Below are positions 249 to 10,915 of a stretch of DNA of 64,000 nucleotides, in pieces. Within the stretch, counting starts at the first letter, position 1, and every line of letters begins with the position of its first letter. The position numbers and the translations under genes were made by a program. Source of the DNA: Ramazzottius varieornatus (lineage: Eukaryota > Animalia > Tardigrada); assembly GCA_001949185.1 (NCBI GenBank), contig BDGG01000014.1, positions 465,378-529,377 on the forward strand. Reading direction: 5' to 3'. Below the pieces are notes generated by a model. It was not told where the DNA came from, made no database searches, and saw only the letters and a list, made by a program, of their open reading frames with translations.

Positions 249-1140
249 TTACTTTATTGCGGTCTTTTGAGCCGAAGATTTCTTGTCAGCACTATTGGCT
301 TTCTTCCCCACAGGTTCATGCAAAATGGACAAGCTAATCAGCAACTGCGCTGAGTAGTACGTCCCCATCACAATTAACTTCTCATGCTCTAGCCCCTCTA
401 CAAACATATGCCAGGCTAGACAACTGTCGGAAATTACAAAACTAACTGCGCCACAAACAGCGATCATCAGCCAAAACAATTTCTTTCCTCTTTCCACCTT
501 CTGGCTTTTTGACTCGTTCTTTTTCGCACTTGTCACTTTCTCCACCCGATAGCGCACTATCGTTCGCCATAACATGCTGCATATCAGCAACTGATATACC
601 AATAATGCCACAGTGAATATCTTATCGTCAAAGACTTTTGGTAGGAGGAAGAGATAGTAGGAGAAGCCGGCTAGGAGGATAGGAAATCCGATGGTCCATT
701 CAGCAGGGCGAGTACCCGAAGCCAAGATGTAGGATACATGGCCGGCGCCGAAAGCTAGCATGCCGGGAAGAAAGTAACCGAGGCTTGACAGTTGAAGGAA
801 GACATCACCGGCAGCGGAGAAAAGTAGCCCGATGAGGATGCAGAGGGACTGACGTGAACGTGAGGGGATGCAGACGCCGCGTTGAAGCACAAAGATGGCC
901 AGGGCGACGATAGGCGCAGCTTTGGTCAGACATGCTTTGAAGGTGACTTCGTCGTGGGGATGTTGGAAGGTGGTGTAGAGGAATGTGGCGAAACAGAACG
1001 GAAGTGTCCATCGCAAATCTTCCGAGCTCTGGAAAAAATGATCGAACGCTAGTTCCCGTAAAGTTGGAGCACGCAAATATAAGAATAGAACCGTCCAAAT
1101 TGAGCGCGAGATTTTGCTGACATACCAGTTTCCCCGTCAT
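249..1140 (-). CDS. TMEM86: Lysoplasmalogenase-like membrane protein (TMEM86/YhhN family)
   Basis: Hydrophobic multi-TM ORF with LKAAP-like, GLLFSAAGDVFL, FLPGMLAFGAGHVSY, GAVSFVISDSCLA and MGTYYSAQ motifs. Micro-exon 1140-1126 (MTGKL) is joined through a GT-AG intron (1125-1029) to exon 1028-249. A possible further exon is described in findings. Confidence 0.88.
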
Positions 1141-1816
1141 TCCTGCAAATATGAAATGTTAACCCGTTGGCAAAAGCGGGATTTAGATCCAACTTGTTAG
1201 GGGAAGAAACAGGAAGTGGGAACACAGCTGATTTCCTGCTTAATGTTGGTGTATACTGTAGTTAACTTACAGTATCAGCTGAGTTGTAGTCTGGACGTGG
1301 GCACTTTACAAGTCGACGATGAACCGCACAGTACAGACAGTGCAACGAAAAGCCCGGCATAATGGGCAGGTACACAGGCTAGGTTGTTTGATGATAGTGG
1401 AAAATCAGATTTAGCTACTGCGTATAGCGTGCCCTGGTTTTCCTGTCATCTGACTTATTGCGTAGAACTTCCGGTATGAAGGGGCGAATTTAGCCATTTG
1501 TACGCATACGAAACTGCAAAACTCCGCACCAGAAAGCCATGTACTCAGACAAGATCTTGTCCACAAGTCCGCTGGCAGTTTTGCCGCTATGGTGCCCGAA
1601 GGGGTAAAAGACCTGTTTAGTCAAGGGAAAGTAGAGAAACTCAACCAATTTCTCCAGACCAACTTGACTGCTTAGTTCAACATGAAAAGTAATATTTGTA
1701 GCCATTACAGCATCATGCGTTTGTAAAAACTGCGGGTGTGTCTTGTGATTAAAAGTTTGATAGCGGGTCCTGACACCACCTCATAACTTTTGCAAATTTT
1801 CCAGCTTTTTTCAAAC

Positions 1817-3213
1817 ATGCAGCTATCATTAAGTATCTTTCGCATCCTCTGTTTTCCTGGCGTCGGATTGTCTCAAGTCTCAATTTTACCAAAGATAGTC
1901 CAGATAGATTCCCCACAAACCCACAGCATCGACCCGATGTCTCTTCCTTTGCCCCTTATTACCAACAGCGCGAAACACAAGAGTCAAGAAATCCGCCAGC
2001 CGCCTGACGCCACGCTGAACGTCCCAAAAGGTTTTACAGTCAACATCTTCGCGAGCGGCGATCCTCCTAATGTTTTCCAAAAGCCTCGCCAGATGATATT
2101 GGCGCCGAATGGGGACATATTCTTGTCCGATACGGACGTCGACGGTAAAGTCTACGTTTTGCGAGATCACGAAATGGATGGAGTCGCTGATGAACGCTTT
2201 ACTTTCGCCTCTGGTTTGATCAAGCCTTACGGCCTCGCTTTCAATAATGGATTTCTATACGTCGCTACTACTCATTCGGTAGTCAGGTTCCCCTATCAGT
2301 TCGGAGATACGCGTGCAAGCGCAGATCCGGAAACGGTTGTGCCTTTGACCGAAGACGGTAAGTGGCTGGGTAGAACCATCCAATTTCAGATAGGACGGAC
2401 AAACAGTACGACTGACCGTCTCGCACTGACAGTCTAAATCTGGTTTTTCCCCCCACAGATGAAGGACATACCACACGTGACATCAAGTTTTCTCTGGATG
2501 GTTCGGAATTTTTCGTCGGCGTTGGGTCTTCTGGTGATGTTCTCGCTGCCGTTGGTTCTACCGGGGATTCGCTCGTCGAAGGCGATCCTCTTCGAGCGGC
2601 CATCAGTGTCTACAACGTCAGCGGCACCGATCGACAGACGTTTGCTTCAGGCATTCGTAATCCAGCCAGTTTAGCTGTCAATCCCGTCAACGGTGAGCTA
2701 TGGACCACCGCCGCTGAGCGTAACGGATTTGGCGAGGACTTAATTCCCGACTATGCTACATCGGTGAAAGAAGGGGGATTTTACGGATATCCTTATTCGT
2801 ACATCGGCAAGAATCCTGATCCGAGGTTCGCGCACGACAGACCCGACCTTGTTGATCAGGGGATCGTCCCAGACGTGCTGTTCATTGCCCACTCAGCACC
2901 GTTGGGCATGACTTTCTACAATGGTACAATGTTCCCCAAGGAGTACCAGGGAGATGCCTTTGTGGCGCTGCACGGATCGTCTGATCGGCAGGAACTGACA
3001 GGGTACAAGGTTGTCCGCATCAAGTTCGACAACGGAAAGTTGGTCAAGAACGAGTACGAAGATTTCTTGACTGGATGGCTCAGTAGTCCGGACGACAATA
3101 AAGTCTGGGGTCGTCCAGTAGCTGTCGCCGTTGCTGGCGATGGGGCGCTATTAATCAGTGATGATGGGGCAAAGAAAATATGGCGGATTAGTTATTGCGG
3201 AGACAAGTGCTAG
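1817..3213 (+). CDS. Secreted PQQ-dependent sugar dehydrogenase (glucose/L-sorbosone dehydrogenase beta-propeller family), copy 1
   Basis: Exons 1817-2357 and 2459-3213 with a phase-1 intron GTAAGT...CCCACAG. Signal-peptide-like N-terminus. Motifs LNVPKGFTV, APNGDIF, GHTTR, GIRNP, GGFYGYPY, HSAPLG, LHGS, GRPV and LISDD. Confidence 0.85.
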
Positions 3214-4036
3214 AGCAACTGTGGCATTACTAGTTCACTCAGAAATGGCTCAGCTAATGTAACAACAACATCAGCAACGAGCATTTGTTCCGAATCTACG
3301 TTCAGTGGACAACAAGATGTACTGCAGCCGAAGTTCGGTCAGCTTCTTTGATATTGTCTCAAATTTTTCTTATCGAGGGTAGAGGTGATGCATGCGTTCC
3401 TGTTTTGTTAGACGTAAAGCACAAGACAAAAACGCTTTCAAAAATGGGTGTCAACAGGAACCAGGCGGACTTAGCGAATCGAATGTGGGCGTTGACTTGA
3501 CACTGGGTTTGATTCCTTGCCCGTACTTAAAACGCTCCGCCCATTTTGAAGCTTATTCCGTTATGCACTTTTACCATGCGGTGTGGGGTTTTGACATTTC
3601 TAAAAAGTAAACACAACAGAGTATGCGTTAAACAACGATCAGGAGGGTGGATCAGCAGTTTTGTCGCAAGTGTTACCGGAAAGGCGATTGTATGTACTGT
3701 ACGGATGCATCAATGCTGTATTACTGTATTTTTAGGAAGTGGAACATCTCTAGGCGGTGGCGTTATTGTCCTGGTAGAAACGAGCGTGAAACAGGTTATA
3801 TGGTTCCGGAAGCATGGTTAGGCTTCAACGCTGTTTGTTTTGTTTTCTTTTCTCGTGAACAGAAGAAGTCTGCACCTTTGGACAATCAGACAGCAGGCTG
3901 ATAGGTGCACTGGAACACCAGTGCACACGTGTTATCTGGTTTGGGGTTTTCCTTTTACCCGCAACTTTCTGCTTGGATAAACCGAGTCGTGTACCCTCTT
4001 TTCGCTTCGTTTTCTGGGGGCAAATCTAGCGTCAAA

Positions 4037-5511
4037 ATGCGACTGTTCTCGATCTTGGTGTGCCTGATTAACATCTGGAACCCCAGTTGGTCCCAACAGC
4101 TACCAAGGATCAATCAAGTGGACAACCCGCAAACTTACAGCATCGACCCCAATTCACTTCCACCACCTTTTGCCACCAGCAGCGCACGGCGCGGCAGCCT
4201 ACAAATCCCACAACCGCATGATGCAACGTTGAATGTCCCTAAAGGCTTCACAGTCAACATCTTCTCCAGCGGAGAATTCCCCAATGACTACCAGAAGCCT
4301 CGACAAATGGCCCTGACACCCAATGGCGACATCTTCCTCACTGATATGGAAGCCGGTGACGTCTTCGTCCTGCGGGATAACAATAATGATGGAGTAGCTG
4401 ATGAACGCTTTACTTTCGCCACTGGTTTGACTGAGCCTTTCGGCTTGACTTTCAGTGACGGGTTTTTATATGTGGCTGACGTCCATTCAGTTGTCCGATA
4501 TCCATACAGATCGGGGCAAACCAAGGCAAGAAGTGCAGCTGAAAAGATTGCAGACCTAACAGATGGTAAGGTGAAATAACTGGGAACTGGGCAGACAACC
4601 ACGACCAGACTTGTTTTTTAGGTGGCGCACGTCCTCAGTGATATTGCTGAAATCTTGCGCCGCTTGAAAAGTCGATCTGCTCGAGTGTTTTTGACGAGCT
4701 TTCAGCTGGCGTTTCAGGAACAACGGCTGCTTGTCAAATGCAAGGCTGTTCTTCGTTGAACACAAGTTTCCATTATGATATTGCAGACAGGGGACACAGC
4801 ACACGGGACATTAAGTTCTCCTTGGACGGTTCCAAGTTTTTTGTAGCAGTGGGTTCTACTGGCAATGTGAACATCGAGCGTGATCCTCTTCGAGCCGCAA
4901 TCACGAGCTTCAACCCCGACGGCAGCAACCGTCAGACCTACGCTACGGGCCTCCGTAACCCAGTCAGTCTGGCCGTCAACCCCGTCAACGGCGTTCTGTG
5001 GACGTGCGTCAACGAGCGTGACGAAACGGGTGACGACTTGGTTCCCGACTATGCCACTTCGGTGCAAGAAGGGGGCTTCTACGGCTGGCCATACTCGTAC
5101 ATCGGCCAAAACCCGGATCCCAGAGTCCCGCAGATTAGACCGGACTTGGTCAGCCGAGCCATTGTTCCCGATGTCCTCTTCACTTCGCATTCAGCTCCGC
5201 TGGGTATTACCTTCTATACTGGTACGCAGTTTCCTAAAGAGTATCATGGGGATGCATTTGTGACGCTGCATGGCTCGTGGAATCGCCATAAAATGACGGG
5301 TTTTAAAGTTGTGCGCATCAAGTTCCAGAATGGGAAGGTGATCAGGAACGAGTACGAGGATTTCTTGACTGGCTGGCTGAGAAGTGCCGATGACAACACA
5401 GTTTGGGGTCGTCCAGTTGGTGTCGTGGTTGCGGCCGATGGGTCCTTGCTGGTCAGTGATGACGGTGCAAAGAAAATATGGCGGATTAGTTATTGCGGAA
5501 ATAATTGCTGA
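4037..5511 (+). CDS. Secreted PQQ-dependent sugar dehydrogenase (glucose/L-sorbosone dehydrogenase family), copy 2
   Basis: Exons 4037-4565 and 4787-5511 with a phase-1 intron at the same codon as copy 1. Signal peptide MRLFSILVCLINIWNPSWS. Canonical motifs GHSTR, GLRNP, VNERD, VPDY, GGFYGWPY, HSAPLG, HGSWNR and WGRPVG. Confidence 0.88.
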
Positions 5512-5965
5512 TACTTTTTTGGTTCTACTGGCAGATACCTTGCGTAATTGCGGCATGATGAACGGTTTACGTTTAATGTTGCGAATGGAATGTTCCATTT
5601 TACAAAACATGGCACGATGGGACTATATTGCTAGAATCGGACAATCATAAGTCATAACTCGTCTAGGCAGTTTCCTTGTCCTTCTATAAATGCAGTATCA
5701 TGGTACTGAAGAGACGGTAACACCAGACACTTCTTTCGGCTTGTTTACTGGTTGTTGAGCCGACAATAAAAGATCAGCGGTGGAAGGAAATATTCTCCGG
5801 CTATAAAACGTATGAATCAAGTCCGCCGACTCTCGAAGACCGAACGACAGAAAATAAAATGAAAGCCGGGTGGGAGTGCTGATTGCAACAGAATAAGCGG
5901 ATGGATTACTGCTCGTCAGTGATGAAGCGCGAGCCAAAACTTTGGCGTTATCAGCTAGTTGCTGC

Positions 5966-8752: not shown

Positions 8753-10915
8753 ATGGCTTTCTCCTCCAGAATCCTCAAATTTGCCTCGCTCAGAGTAATC
8801 GTGAGGCAGATTCATAATGCGACTATCAGCCGTCCGGCTGGCTTTCCAGAATCCACCAGGACGATCGACGAAAGTAAGTGCCGTCATAACAATATGGGCC
8901 AGCGGCAGAGTAGATTAATAAGGCGGGGCTAGTTGGGAAATATGGAACGGGAACAAGGAGAAAATTATCTGCAGTCGCCCAATCAAGATTGTCCAAGTCG
9001 AAGGTTTTGCTCGCTGATTGTTCATTTACGAATATTCTTTAATTTCATGTCCCGCTTCATATGGTGTTATCTGTCCACGCCTTACCGATCTACGCTGCCG
9101 CTGGCCCATATTATGGTGAACACCTGTCTACCTGTCTTTATTTTCAGTGCGAGAAAATATGAGAAATCTGGTTGGTACACCCACAACTTTCAAGTAAAGC
9201 GATCCAGCTGCACCTTGGCTGTTTGCGGTCACGAGAAAAGAATATTCAGCGTAAATGCTCTCTGTTGTAGGGAGTCGACAAGAATCCAGCATGCCGTTAC
9301 ACCTCTTGCTGAGAGTCAGGACGAGCTACCTCCTCGCCGTTTGTTCGACAGCTATGATGAAATTATCATTCCACTCAAAGACAATGTTACGAAACGAGAG
9401 GAATACTACAATGCCTTCCACAAAGTCAGATTTGGTCGACTGCTTGAGGATCTCGATATGTTTGCAGGTGCGTGTCTCGTATTCATATATCAGGCAGTGC
9501 GCTCAATGCTGCTAGACCGATGCGCCGTTACATCGCAGCACCAACCTACACACCGTTTCTGTTTTGTAGTGTGGCTCACGTACAAACATACGCTCTCAAC
9601 GGAAGATATGGCGACTGCTCGTTCCCCCATGGGAATCGTTACTGGAATGGTGGACAGGATTGACGTGGAGACTAGGGATATTTCCGTTGAGAAAGATATC
9701 ATGTTACGGGGGTTGGTAACATGGGTTGGGCAGTCATCAGCTGAGACGCTGCTTTTGATGGAGCAACCTAATGATCAAGGAGAATGGGTAAAGTTACTGG
9801 AGGCGAGGTTTGTCCTCGTGGCTCGAGATCCTAAGACTAGCCGGTAAGATGTTCAAGCCTTAGTGACCTAAGCGTGTTTTCGAAACTGGATGCTATTTTG
9901 CAGGAAAGCCTTGCTGAATCCATTGGTACCGTCGGGCAAGGAAGAAGAGCTCCTCAACACCGAAGCTACCGGTATGCTTATCAGATATTTTTTTGCTTTG
10001 GCCAGCTTTATTGAATTTCGTTTCACAGGAAGTTATACCAGGAGGAGGCAATGGATGGAGGAGTCATTATTCAAGATGCCTCCCAATGCTGATGAAACTA
10101 AACTCATCCATGACAAGTTTTTGCAGACGGTCGACCCAAGGTACGGTGGAAAAATCGCGTGGTAAAATATTTTCAGCGCATCTCATAATAAAAATTTTCC
10201 TCTTTTACAGGGAGTCAGTTTTCTCGTACAGAGTGAAGCCGGCCAACTCAGAATGGTTGTCTGACGCGGTACTGAAGAACGTGCATATTTGCCATCCTCA
10301 AAGCCGTAATATATACGGCAAAGTCTTTGGTGGATTTCTGATGCGCAATGCTTTCGAGCTTGCCTGGGTGAACGCTTACATGTACTGGTAAGGTTGATCT
10401 CTTTCTCCGGGTTTTCTTCCACTTATTTGCTGCGTTCGAACTGGGTCTTGTCTTTTTTTACAGTGGATCGCGACCGTTAACCTTGACTGTCGACGATATT
10501 AAATTTCGGCGACCGGTCGAAATCGGTTCCATACTTCTGATGTCGGCCAGGGTAAGTTTAATGTACCGTGGAGGTTAAACCTCTCTTGTTTTCCTAAAAA
10601 TTATGGGTGGAGGAACAAGGAACCGATGGGTTGTAGTTGGTGTATACGGAAGGTCCGCACATGCAAATACGCGTTCACGCCGAAGTGATCGATCCACAAA
10701 CACGAAAGCGAGAAACGACCAACACCTTTTACTTTACCTTCCGTGACGCCACGGGCAAAGCCGTGAAAATCATTATGCCTAAGACGTACTCTGATGCCAT
10801 GATGTACTTGACTGGCAGGAGACACTTTGCCGCCTCGAAACATTACCAAAGGTTGATCGAACTCGCCAAACCTGATGGAGACGGTGCACCAGATAAGGCC
10901 GGTCGAGAATTTTGA
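8753..10915 (+). CDS. ACOT9: Acyl-CoA thioesterase 9, mitochondrial (double hotdog fold), multi-exon
   Basis: Spliced exons give LAESQDELPPRR, VRFGRLLEDLD, IVTGMVDRID, FVLVARD, ICHPQSRNIYGKVFGGFLMR, VDDIKFRRPVEIGS, TTNTFYFTF and MPKTYSDAMMYL. Mitochondrial-targeting-like first exon 8753-8873. Confidence 0.93.

Follow-up and report, generated by a model that had tools for sequence, protein, structure and literature searches.

A tandem pair of genes for bacterial-type, putative PQQ sugar dehydrogenases in the genome of the tardigrade Ramazzottius varieornatus

Background

The genome of the tardigrade Ramazzottius varieornatus contains two neighbouring genes whose closest relatives are bacterial. 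They lie head to tail on the + strand, with two exons each, at positions 1817-5511 of a stretch of 64,000 nucleotides (BDGG01000014.1:465,378-529,377) that we call the window and to which all coordinates refer unless another contig is named. Both belong to a family of four genes in this genome, and we regard the horizontal bacterial origin of that family as almost certain. Judging from the sequences, it is also reasonably probable that the whole family descends from one bacterial sugar dehydrogenase dependent on pyrroloquinoline quinone (PQQ) and Ca2+, with the mechanism described below.

The transfer itself, which the initial annotation of this DNA implied to be new, is not new, as a published catalogue already contains it. 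S4 Data of Yoshida et al. 2017 (PLoS Biol, PMC5531438) lists the Hypsibius dujardini protein bHd03672.1 as a high-likelihood prokaryotic transfer (orthogroup OG0008212; InterPro Glc/Sorbosone_DH; tag 'Phylogeny_and_expression_and_perdurance'), expressed and with 2 introns; the classification draws on phylogeny, on expression and on occurrence in both species. It also names the Ramazzottius homologues: RvY_16739 (two isoforms), RvY_16740, RvY_17300 and RvY_10993. The entry is a table row, and the donor lineage, intron conservation, active sites, PQQ supply and function are not discussed there. In our literature search, the four RvY gene ids were absent from main texts and no paper tied tardigrades to sorbosone dehydrogenase. 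An analogous case has been described in centipedes by So et al. 2022. What we add here is the donor lineage, the order of events (a new leader and an intron first, duplications after), a residue-level split of the family into two canonical and two divergent copies, and the finding of no PQQ synthesis pathway in the animal.

Results

The two genes are arranged as follows.

1817-3213, + strand: gene 1, RvY_16739
1817..2357, + strand: gene 1 exon 1, with a signal-peptide-like start and propeller blades 1-2; DUF7133 match; present in transcript contigs
2358..2458, + strand: gene 1 intron, 101 nt, GT..AG, phase 1; joint 2357|2459 in contigs of 4 runs
2459..3213, + strand: gene 1 exon 2, with a GSDH match; C-terminus CGDKC, then stop
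2518..2547, + strand: 30-nt insert in gene 1, an alignment gap against gene 2; contained in transcript contigs
4037-5511, + strand: gene 2, RvY_16740 (GAV06817.1)
4037..4565, + strand: gene 2 exon 1, with a signal-peptide-like start and propeller blades 1-2
4566..4786, + strand: gene 2 intron, 221 nt, GT..AG, phase 1; joint 4565|4787 in contigs of 4 runs
4787..5511, + strand: gene 2 exon 2, with a GSDH match and all family-invariant motifs intact; C-terminus CGNNC, then stop

The introns of the two genes have an identical codon position and phase, and the split codon lies three codons upstream of the histidine of the GHxTR motif. Between the two genes, identity is 70% for exon 2 and 63% for exon 1. 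The insert of gene 1 is a diverged tandem copy of the adjoining downstream 30 nt; it doubles a GSxG(N/D) motif and adds 10 residues. GAV06817.1 ('hypothetical protein RvY_16740'), encoded on a 1.54 Mb contig, matches exon 2 of gene 2 with 100% identity over its residues 178-417; its total length of 417 amino acids is the one expected from the splice model of the initial annotation. Exons were searched one by one; full-length analyses used the public protein P0001 (= RvY_16740), and gene 1 was analysed by exons only.

The initial annotation described two full-length paralogues with one intron each at the same codon and phase, signal-peptide-like starts and a C-terminal CxxxC. Gene structures and transcripts agree with this description, and the hydrophobic N-termini and the CGDKC and CGNNC ends are present. 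The full set of family motifs that it credited to both genes is found in gene 2 but not in gene 1, which has AERN for NERD and HGSSDR for HGSWNR. Its two paralogues are both real, and the genome adds two more outside the window. A search of the genome gives exactly four matches, whether with the RvY_16740 protein or with the GSDH model, and no other GSDH-type locus. The two additional copies, which we call the C15 and C5 copies after their contigs, are:

G000:C15:528809-532531 (L083), exon 2 at L083:1498-2334: third paralogue, probably RvY_17300
G000:C5:3215965-3219669 (L084), - strand: fourth paralogue, probably RvY_10993

We read the C15 and C5 loci as well, and a phase-1 intron interrupts the same codon in all four copies. 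The intron must therefore predate every duplication. Synonymous sites are saturated in all pairs (proportion of synonymous differences, pS, 0.66-0.83), with nonsynonymous divergence (dN) of 0.20-0.40; for the tandem pair the ratio of nonsynonymous to synonymous divergence (dN/dS) is about 0.13. It follows that the copies are old and all under purifying selection. The C5 copy has the longest branch among them.

The closest relatives of these genes are bacterial proteins of 65-71% identity, annotated 'sorbosone dehydrogenase family protein' or 'PQQ-dependent sugar dehydrogenase'. Those with names come from Pyrinomonadaceae, Blastocatellia, Aridibacter and other Acidobacteriota. In a careful IQ-TREE analysis of the exon-2 region (100 rows; quick and FastTree versions were also made), the four tardigrade copies and a metagenome fragment, P0002, form one clade (support 99/99), which lies within a 32-row clade of Blastocatellia and unclassified Acidobacteriota (support 99/94). 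An independent tree of the exon-1 region gives the same placement, with support of 99 and 99. P0002 is a 220-amino-acid fragment encoded on an ENA metagenome contig of 993 bp; it has CGDSC as its C-terminus and 78% identity to gene 2, and its probable source is another tardigrade present in the environmental sample. Scanning metagenomes with P0002 returned bacterial relatives only, at no more than 71% identity, and no further tardigrade-like contigs. The Hypsibius orthologue was absent from the results of two protein database searches, and the only annotated Ramazzottius protein that both of them yielded was that of gene 2 (P0001); the product of gene 1 is missing from them owing to a length filter.

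The phylogeny and the common intron support a single bacterial transfer, then intron gain, then duplication. This is the course of events that the initial annotation had proposed. Horizontal transfer from bacteria is borne out by the nesting of one tardigrade clade in a Blastocatellia-rich clade in both exon trees, and intron gain before duplication by the intron position common to all four copies.

Transcripts were examined in 4 runs from 4 studies, out of 20 listed public runs containing the region, and compared over 1700-5700. These runs are available as Logan contigs; that they represent RNA is a guess on record, and only spliced joints prove derivation from RNA. In all 4 runs contigs omit exactly 101 bases (2357|2459) and 221 bases (4565|4787), with GT..AG ends, and the spliced contigs otherwise agree with the genome. 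Such exact skipping means that the contigs derive from spliced RNA; both introns are removed precisely as had been predicted from the DNA. One run also holds an unspliced contig, 2328-2487, across the intron of gene 1, which could be intron retention or contaminating DNA. RvY_16739 is listed with two isoforms,.1 and.2, in the table of Yoshida et al. 2017 (PMC5531438).

The tandem genes have two exact runs in common, one of 33 nt (3169-3201 / 5467-5499) and one of 24 nt (2186-2209 / 4397-4420). The former corresponds to the last conserved codons upstream of the CxxxC end, and because of it all transcript contigs break at 3198/3172 and 5496/5467. Both runs stand against otherwise near-saturated synonymous sites (pS 0.66). 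Short gene-conversion tracts or constraint at the nucleotide level are possible sources.

With respect to protein family, Pfam GSDH (PF07995) matches exon 2 of both genes with E about 1e-12; scores for these exons and for full-length RvY_16740 are 47-51 bits against a cut-off of 25. DUF7133 (PF23500) matches exon 1 of gene 1 at 27.5 bits (cut-off 27), and gene 2, at 25.4, falls just below. An AlphaFold2 model, made for RvY_16740 only, is a six-bladed beta-propeller (predicted local distance difference test, pLDDT, 90; predicted template modelling score, pTM, 0.90). Foldseek ranks the fungal AA12 enzymes TrAA12 and CcPDH first among its structural matches, ahead of the soluble glucose dehydrogenase (sGDH) of Acinetobacter and Asd-type aldose dehydrogenases (E 1e-21 to 1e-14). 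A sequence profile of the family compared with the PDB gives the same leaders: CcPDH at 5.5e-15, TrAA12 at 1.6e-13, then E. coli Asd at 3e-7. The Pfam model for TrAA12 (PF22807) scores 22.6 bits on RvY_16740, under its cut-off of 30.9. As AA12 is nearest by fold and profile, yet its TrAA12 model stays below the cut-off, the sequences place these proteins in a distinct bacterial subfamily that is AA12-like rather than AA12 proper. An HHIP-like identity was considered and rejected: HHIP matches at the level of fold only, from rank 24 downwards in the fold search and 12-14% identity, and in the trees the genes lie inside Blastocatellia.

Active-site residues were mapped by combining tool alignments with the numbering of two structure papers (PMC6881789, PMC6881810), using PDB chain offsets of +239 (CcPDH) and +26 (TrAA12), each verified on several residues. 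In RvY_16740 numbering the correspondences are:

His180 (of GHxTR): CcPDH His363, TrAA12 His153, sGDH His144; proposed general base
Arg233 / Asn234: CcPDH Arg430 / Asn431; at the PQQ quinone
Arg89, His311, His338, Arg385: CcPDH Arg273, His539, His560, Arg621; carboxylate ligands
Trp341 / Asn342: CcPDH Trp563 / Asn564; main-chain contacts
Asn252 / Glu253 / Asp255: TrAA12 Asn239 / Ser240 / Asp242; floor of the PQQ pocket and ligands of the catalytic Ca2+

His180 aligns with chain residue 124 of CcPDH and chain residue 127 of TrAA12. The four copies were then compared with 164 full-length bacterial homologues at 113 columns conserved to at least 97%. R89, R233, N234, H311, H338 and R385 are invariant in the 164 and kept in 4/4 tardigrade copies. 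The catalytic histidine is also kept in 4/4. The copies divide at the remaining columns. Gene 2 departs at 4/113 and the C15 copy at 3/113, all mildly (109 and 110 columns kept), and from their residues both look fully competent. Gene 1 departs at 11/113, among them N203D, V251A, N252A, D255N, W341S and N342D; the C5 copy departs at 12/113, including N203D, R289G, the loss of W341-N342, and R343K. Asp255, a ligand of the catalytic Ca2+ (TrAA12 Asp242, CcPDH Asp451), is present in gene 2 and in the C15 and C5 copies and is Asn in gene 1. The HGSSDR of gene 1 would not be disabling by itself because it resembles the HGSTDR of TrAA12, which is active though weak. Gene 1 and the C5 copy are constrained and carry altered residues around the metal and the PQQ pocket; their chemistry is probably changed or weakened.

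Both ends of the protein differ from those of its bacterial homologues, in which the leader is of lipoprotein type, with a hydrophobic run followed by Cys, and the C-terminus reads ...VSYGK. The tardigrade copies begin with hydrophobic leaders unrelated to the bacterial ones. Judged by eye and hydropathy only, these resemble typical eukaryotic signal peptides in 3/4 copies, that of the C5 copy being poor. A CxxxC C-terminus is found in the tandem pair and in P0002. The C15 copy has no CxxxC; its Ser/Thr-rich linker and hydrophobic tail look, by the same means, like a glycosylphosphatidylinositol (GPI) or membrane anchor.

If these proteins use PQQ, where would it come from? Searching the tardigrade genome gave no match to pqqC or pqqB, and for pqqE only a 21-bit radical-SAM match, in agreement with the view of the initial annotation that the animal would not make the cofactor. 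As the built-in controls gave no information on pqqC, a Sorangium genome was taken as positive control, and there pqqC was found at 315 bits. With pqqB, pqqC and pqqE all undetected, the animal would have to obtain any PQQ from outside. By the same search, pqqC is absent from a complete Pyrinomonadaceae chromosome (G001) that holds a close homologue of the dehydrogenase (locus L005). Reliance on outside PQQ therefore occurs even in a bacterium near the donor lineage. A secreted quinoprotein using outside PQQ fits the kept ligands together with these negative searches.

Turning to the neighbourhood, the initial annotation had placed the pair between the animal genes TMEM86 and ACOT9. The first of these is present as a YhhN/TMEM86-type gene at 249..1076 on the - strand (Pfam PF07947, E 2e-39), given here for context only. 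The second identification found no such backing, as Pfam and PDB searches with single exon pieces of the downstream multi-exon gene (window 8933-10915, +) returned no match. Another catalogued transfer lies close by: the ammonium transporter RvY_16735, about 6 kb before the start of the window, is listed in S4 Data as non-metazoan with high likelihood (OG0000478; PMC5531438). This puts two catalogued transfers, RvY_16735 and the dehydrogenase pair, within about 10 kb.

Hypothesis and alternatives

The data above show where the family came from, how its genes are built, and that they are expressed and conserved; that the tardigrade proteins are secreted, use PQQ and act on sugars we infer. The following history can be suggested. 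The family would go back to a single bacterial gene whose product was a periplasmic lipoprotein, a sugar dehydrogenase of AA12-like, six-bladed-propeller type dependent on PQQ and Ca2+. Its donor was close to Pyrinomonadaceae-like Acidobacteriota of the class Blastocatellia. Once transferred, the gene would have exchanged its lipoprotein leader for a signal peptide of eukaryotic type, and a phase-1 spliceosomal intron would have arisen three codons upstream of the catalytic His. At least three duplications would have followed; the C15 copy would have acquired its hydrophobic C-terminal tail and the lineage of the tandem pair its C-terminal CxxxC. The proteins would be secreted free of cofactor and would load PQQ and Ca2+ from food or environmental bacteria. 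His180 would then act as general base, with hydride passing from the sugar to C5 of PQQ as in sGDH and the AA12 enzymes, and the product would be a lactone or a keto-sugar.

Not all parts of this hypothesis deserve the same confidence. That at least the two canonical copies carry out PQQ-dependent sugar oxidation is slightly more likely than not. A fuller version, in which at least RvY_16740 and RvY_17300 function as quinoproteins, secreted or anchored at the cell surface, with PQQ from food or environmental bacteria, and in which RvY_16739 and RvY_10993 have evolved a new metal or substrate specificity, is more tentative, and we would not quite bet on it.

Several observations weigh against the hypothesis. 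In gene 1, Asn replaces the one residue that binds the catalytic Ca2+ through its side chain, and Ala replaces Asn252 of the PQQ floor. Asn can still bind Ca2+; the two changes together nevertheless suggest altered handling of metal or cofactor. The C5 copy is without two residues of the HGSWNR loop. TrAA12 is itself a very weak enzyme (PMC6881810), and for this reason kept residues are no guarantee of useful turnover. To these can be added the Pfam score for TrAA12 below its cut-off, leaders and a tail read by eye and hydropathy, and the nature of Logan contigs, which show presence and splicing and cannot give level, strand, tissue or condition.

What else could the genes be? The alternative that survives best is that they were horizontally acquired and are now inactive with PQQ, serving as binding propellers (for carbohydrates or other ligands, HHIP-like), sequestering PQQ, or performing other chemistry. 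The six-bladed propellers of this superfamily do include non-enzymes, HHIP is among the structural matches, 2/4 copies have changed at family-invariant positions, one of these a Ca2+ ligand, and the animal, by the negative pqq searches, makes no PQQ. However, 109 of the 113 near-invariant columns are kept in gene 2 and 110 in the C15 copy, including the catalytic His, the PQQ ligands and the Ca2+ loop, and retention on this scale past synonymous saturation is hard to explain without the original chemistry. As for supply, a close bacterial holder is likewise without pqqC, so running on scavenged PQQ is ordinary in this family. We consider this alternative unlikely, though deserving to be kept in mind.

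An old animal family, HHIP-like or otherwise carrying the GSDH domain, could in principle have been inherited vertically and lost in most animals. GSDH-fold proteins such as HHIP do exist in animals, and the best metazoan match of the Hypsibius orthologue, an aphid protein, reaches 246.9 bits. Its best bacterial match is far above this, at 436.8 bits (PMC5531438). In addition, identity between the tardigrade copies and Blastocatellia proteins reaches 71%, trees of two independent regions place the former inside the latter with strong support, HHIP is matched at the level of fold only (about 13% identity), and the genome has no other GSDH-type locus. Vertical descent is thus very improbable. 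Bacterial contamination or a chimeric assembly, which the high identity to soil bacteria and the contamination history of tardigrade assemblies might bring to mind, is already contradicted and deserves practically no credence: GT..AG introns are precisely removed in transcripts of four studies, a eukaryotic YhhN/TMEM86 gene adjoins the pair on a 1.54 Mb contig, four dispersed copies have the same intron, the GC (guanine plus cytosine) content around the genes is unremarkable and like that of the surroundings, and an orthologue is catalogued in Hypsibius (PMC5531438). The host-type introns, spliced transcripts, neighbour and contig are also what upholds the integration into an animal genome asserted in the initial annotation.

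Implications

Whether PQQ is a cofactor of animal enzymes is a long-running question, and to our knowledge no animal PQQ enzyme has been validated. The tardigrade genes offer a direct and cheap test case because they are intact, expressed and constrained, and because two of them keep every PQQ and catalytic calcium residue. If the hypothesis of a PQQ-dependent dehydrogenase is true, PQQ would be a true vitamin-type cofactor of an animal enzyme.

Comparison with known systems

We know several systems to which the tardigrade genes can be compared. The closest bacterial proteins are those of Blastocatellia (Pyrinomonadaceae), with 65-71% identity over the propeller, equal length and all invariant motifs in common. 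They are intronless and have lipoprotein leaders and the ...VSYGK end, whereas in the tardigrade copies the leader is eukaryotic in type, one intron is present and the C-termini are new.

The fungal AA12 enzymes (CcPDH, 6JT5/6JWF; TrAA12, 6H7T/6I1T) are the nearest solved structures by both profile and fold. Aligned positions include the catalytic His, the quinone Arg/Asn, the carboxylate-binding His/Arg residues, the HGSWNR-type loop and the calcium loop NxxD. Like the proposed tardigrade enzymes, they are secreted, eukaryotic and dependent on outside PQQ. In contrast, identity to the tardigrade proteins is only about 20%, and the latter are without the AA8 cytochrome domain or carbohydrate-binding module (CBM). 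The origins are also separate, the tardigrade genes coming directly from bacteria.

More remote are E. coli Asd (YliI, 2G8S) and Acinetobacter sGDH (1CQ1), which belong to the same superfamily, adopt its fold and are likewise proposed to work by hydride transfer (E about 3e-7, identity 14-16%). In these two, Ca2+ is held by main-chain carbonyls and not by an Asp side chain. E. coli is a useful precedent in another respect, since it also makes no PQQ and loads Asd from outside.

Among animals, So et al. 2022 (Nat Commun, PMC9151784) described expressed PQQ-type glucose dehydrogenase genes that had been transferred into the centipede ancestor, and a preprint of 2026 reviews PQQ propellers with eight blades across eukaryotes, a few animals among them. 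As in the tardigrade, the centipede genes are expressed, look like bacterial PQQ sugar dehydrogenase genes and are read as horizontal transfers. They belong to a different animal lineage, and presumably reflect an event independent of the one in tardigrades.

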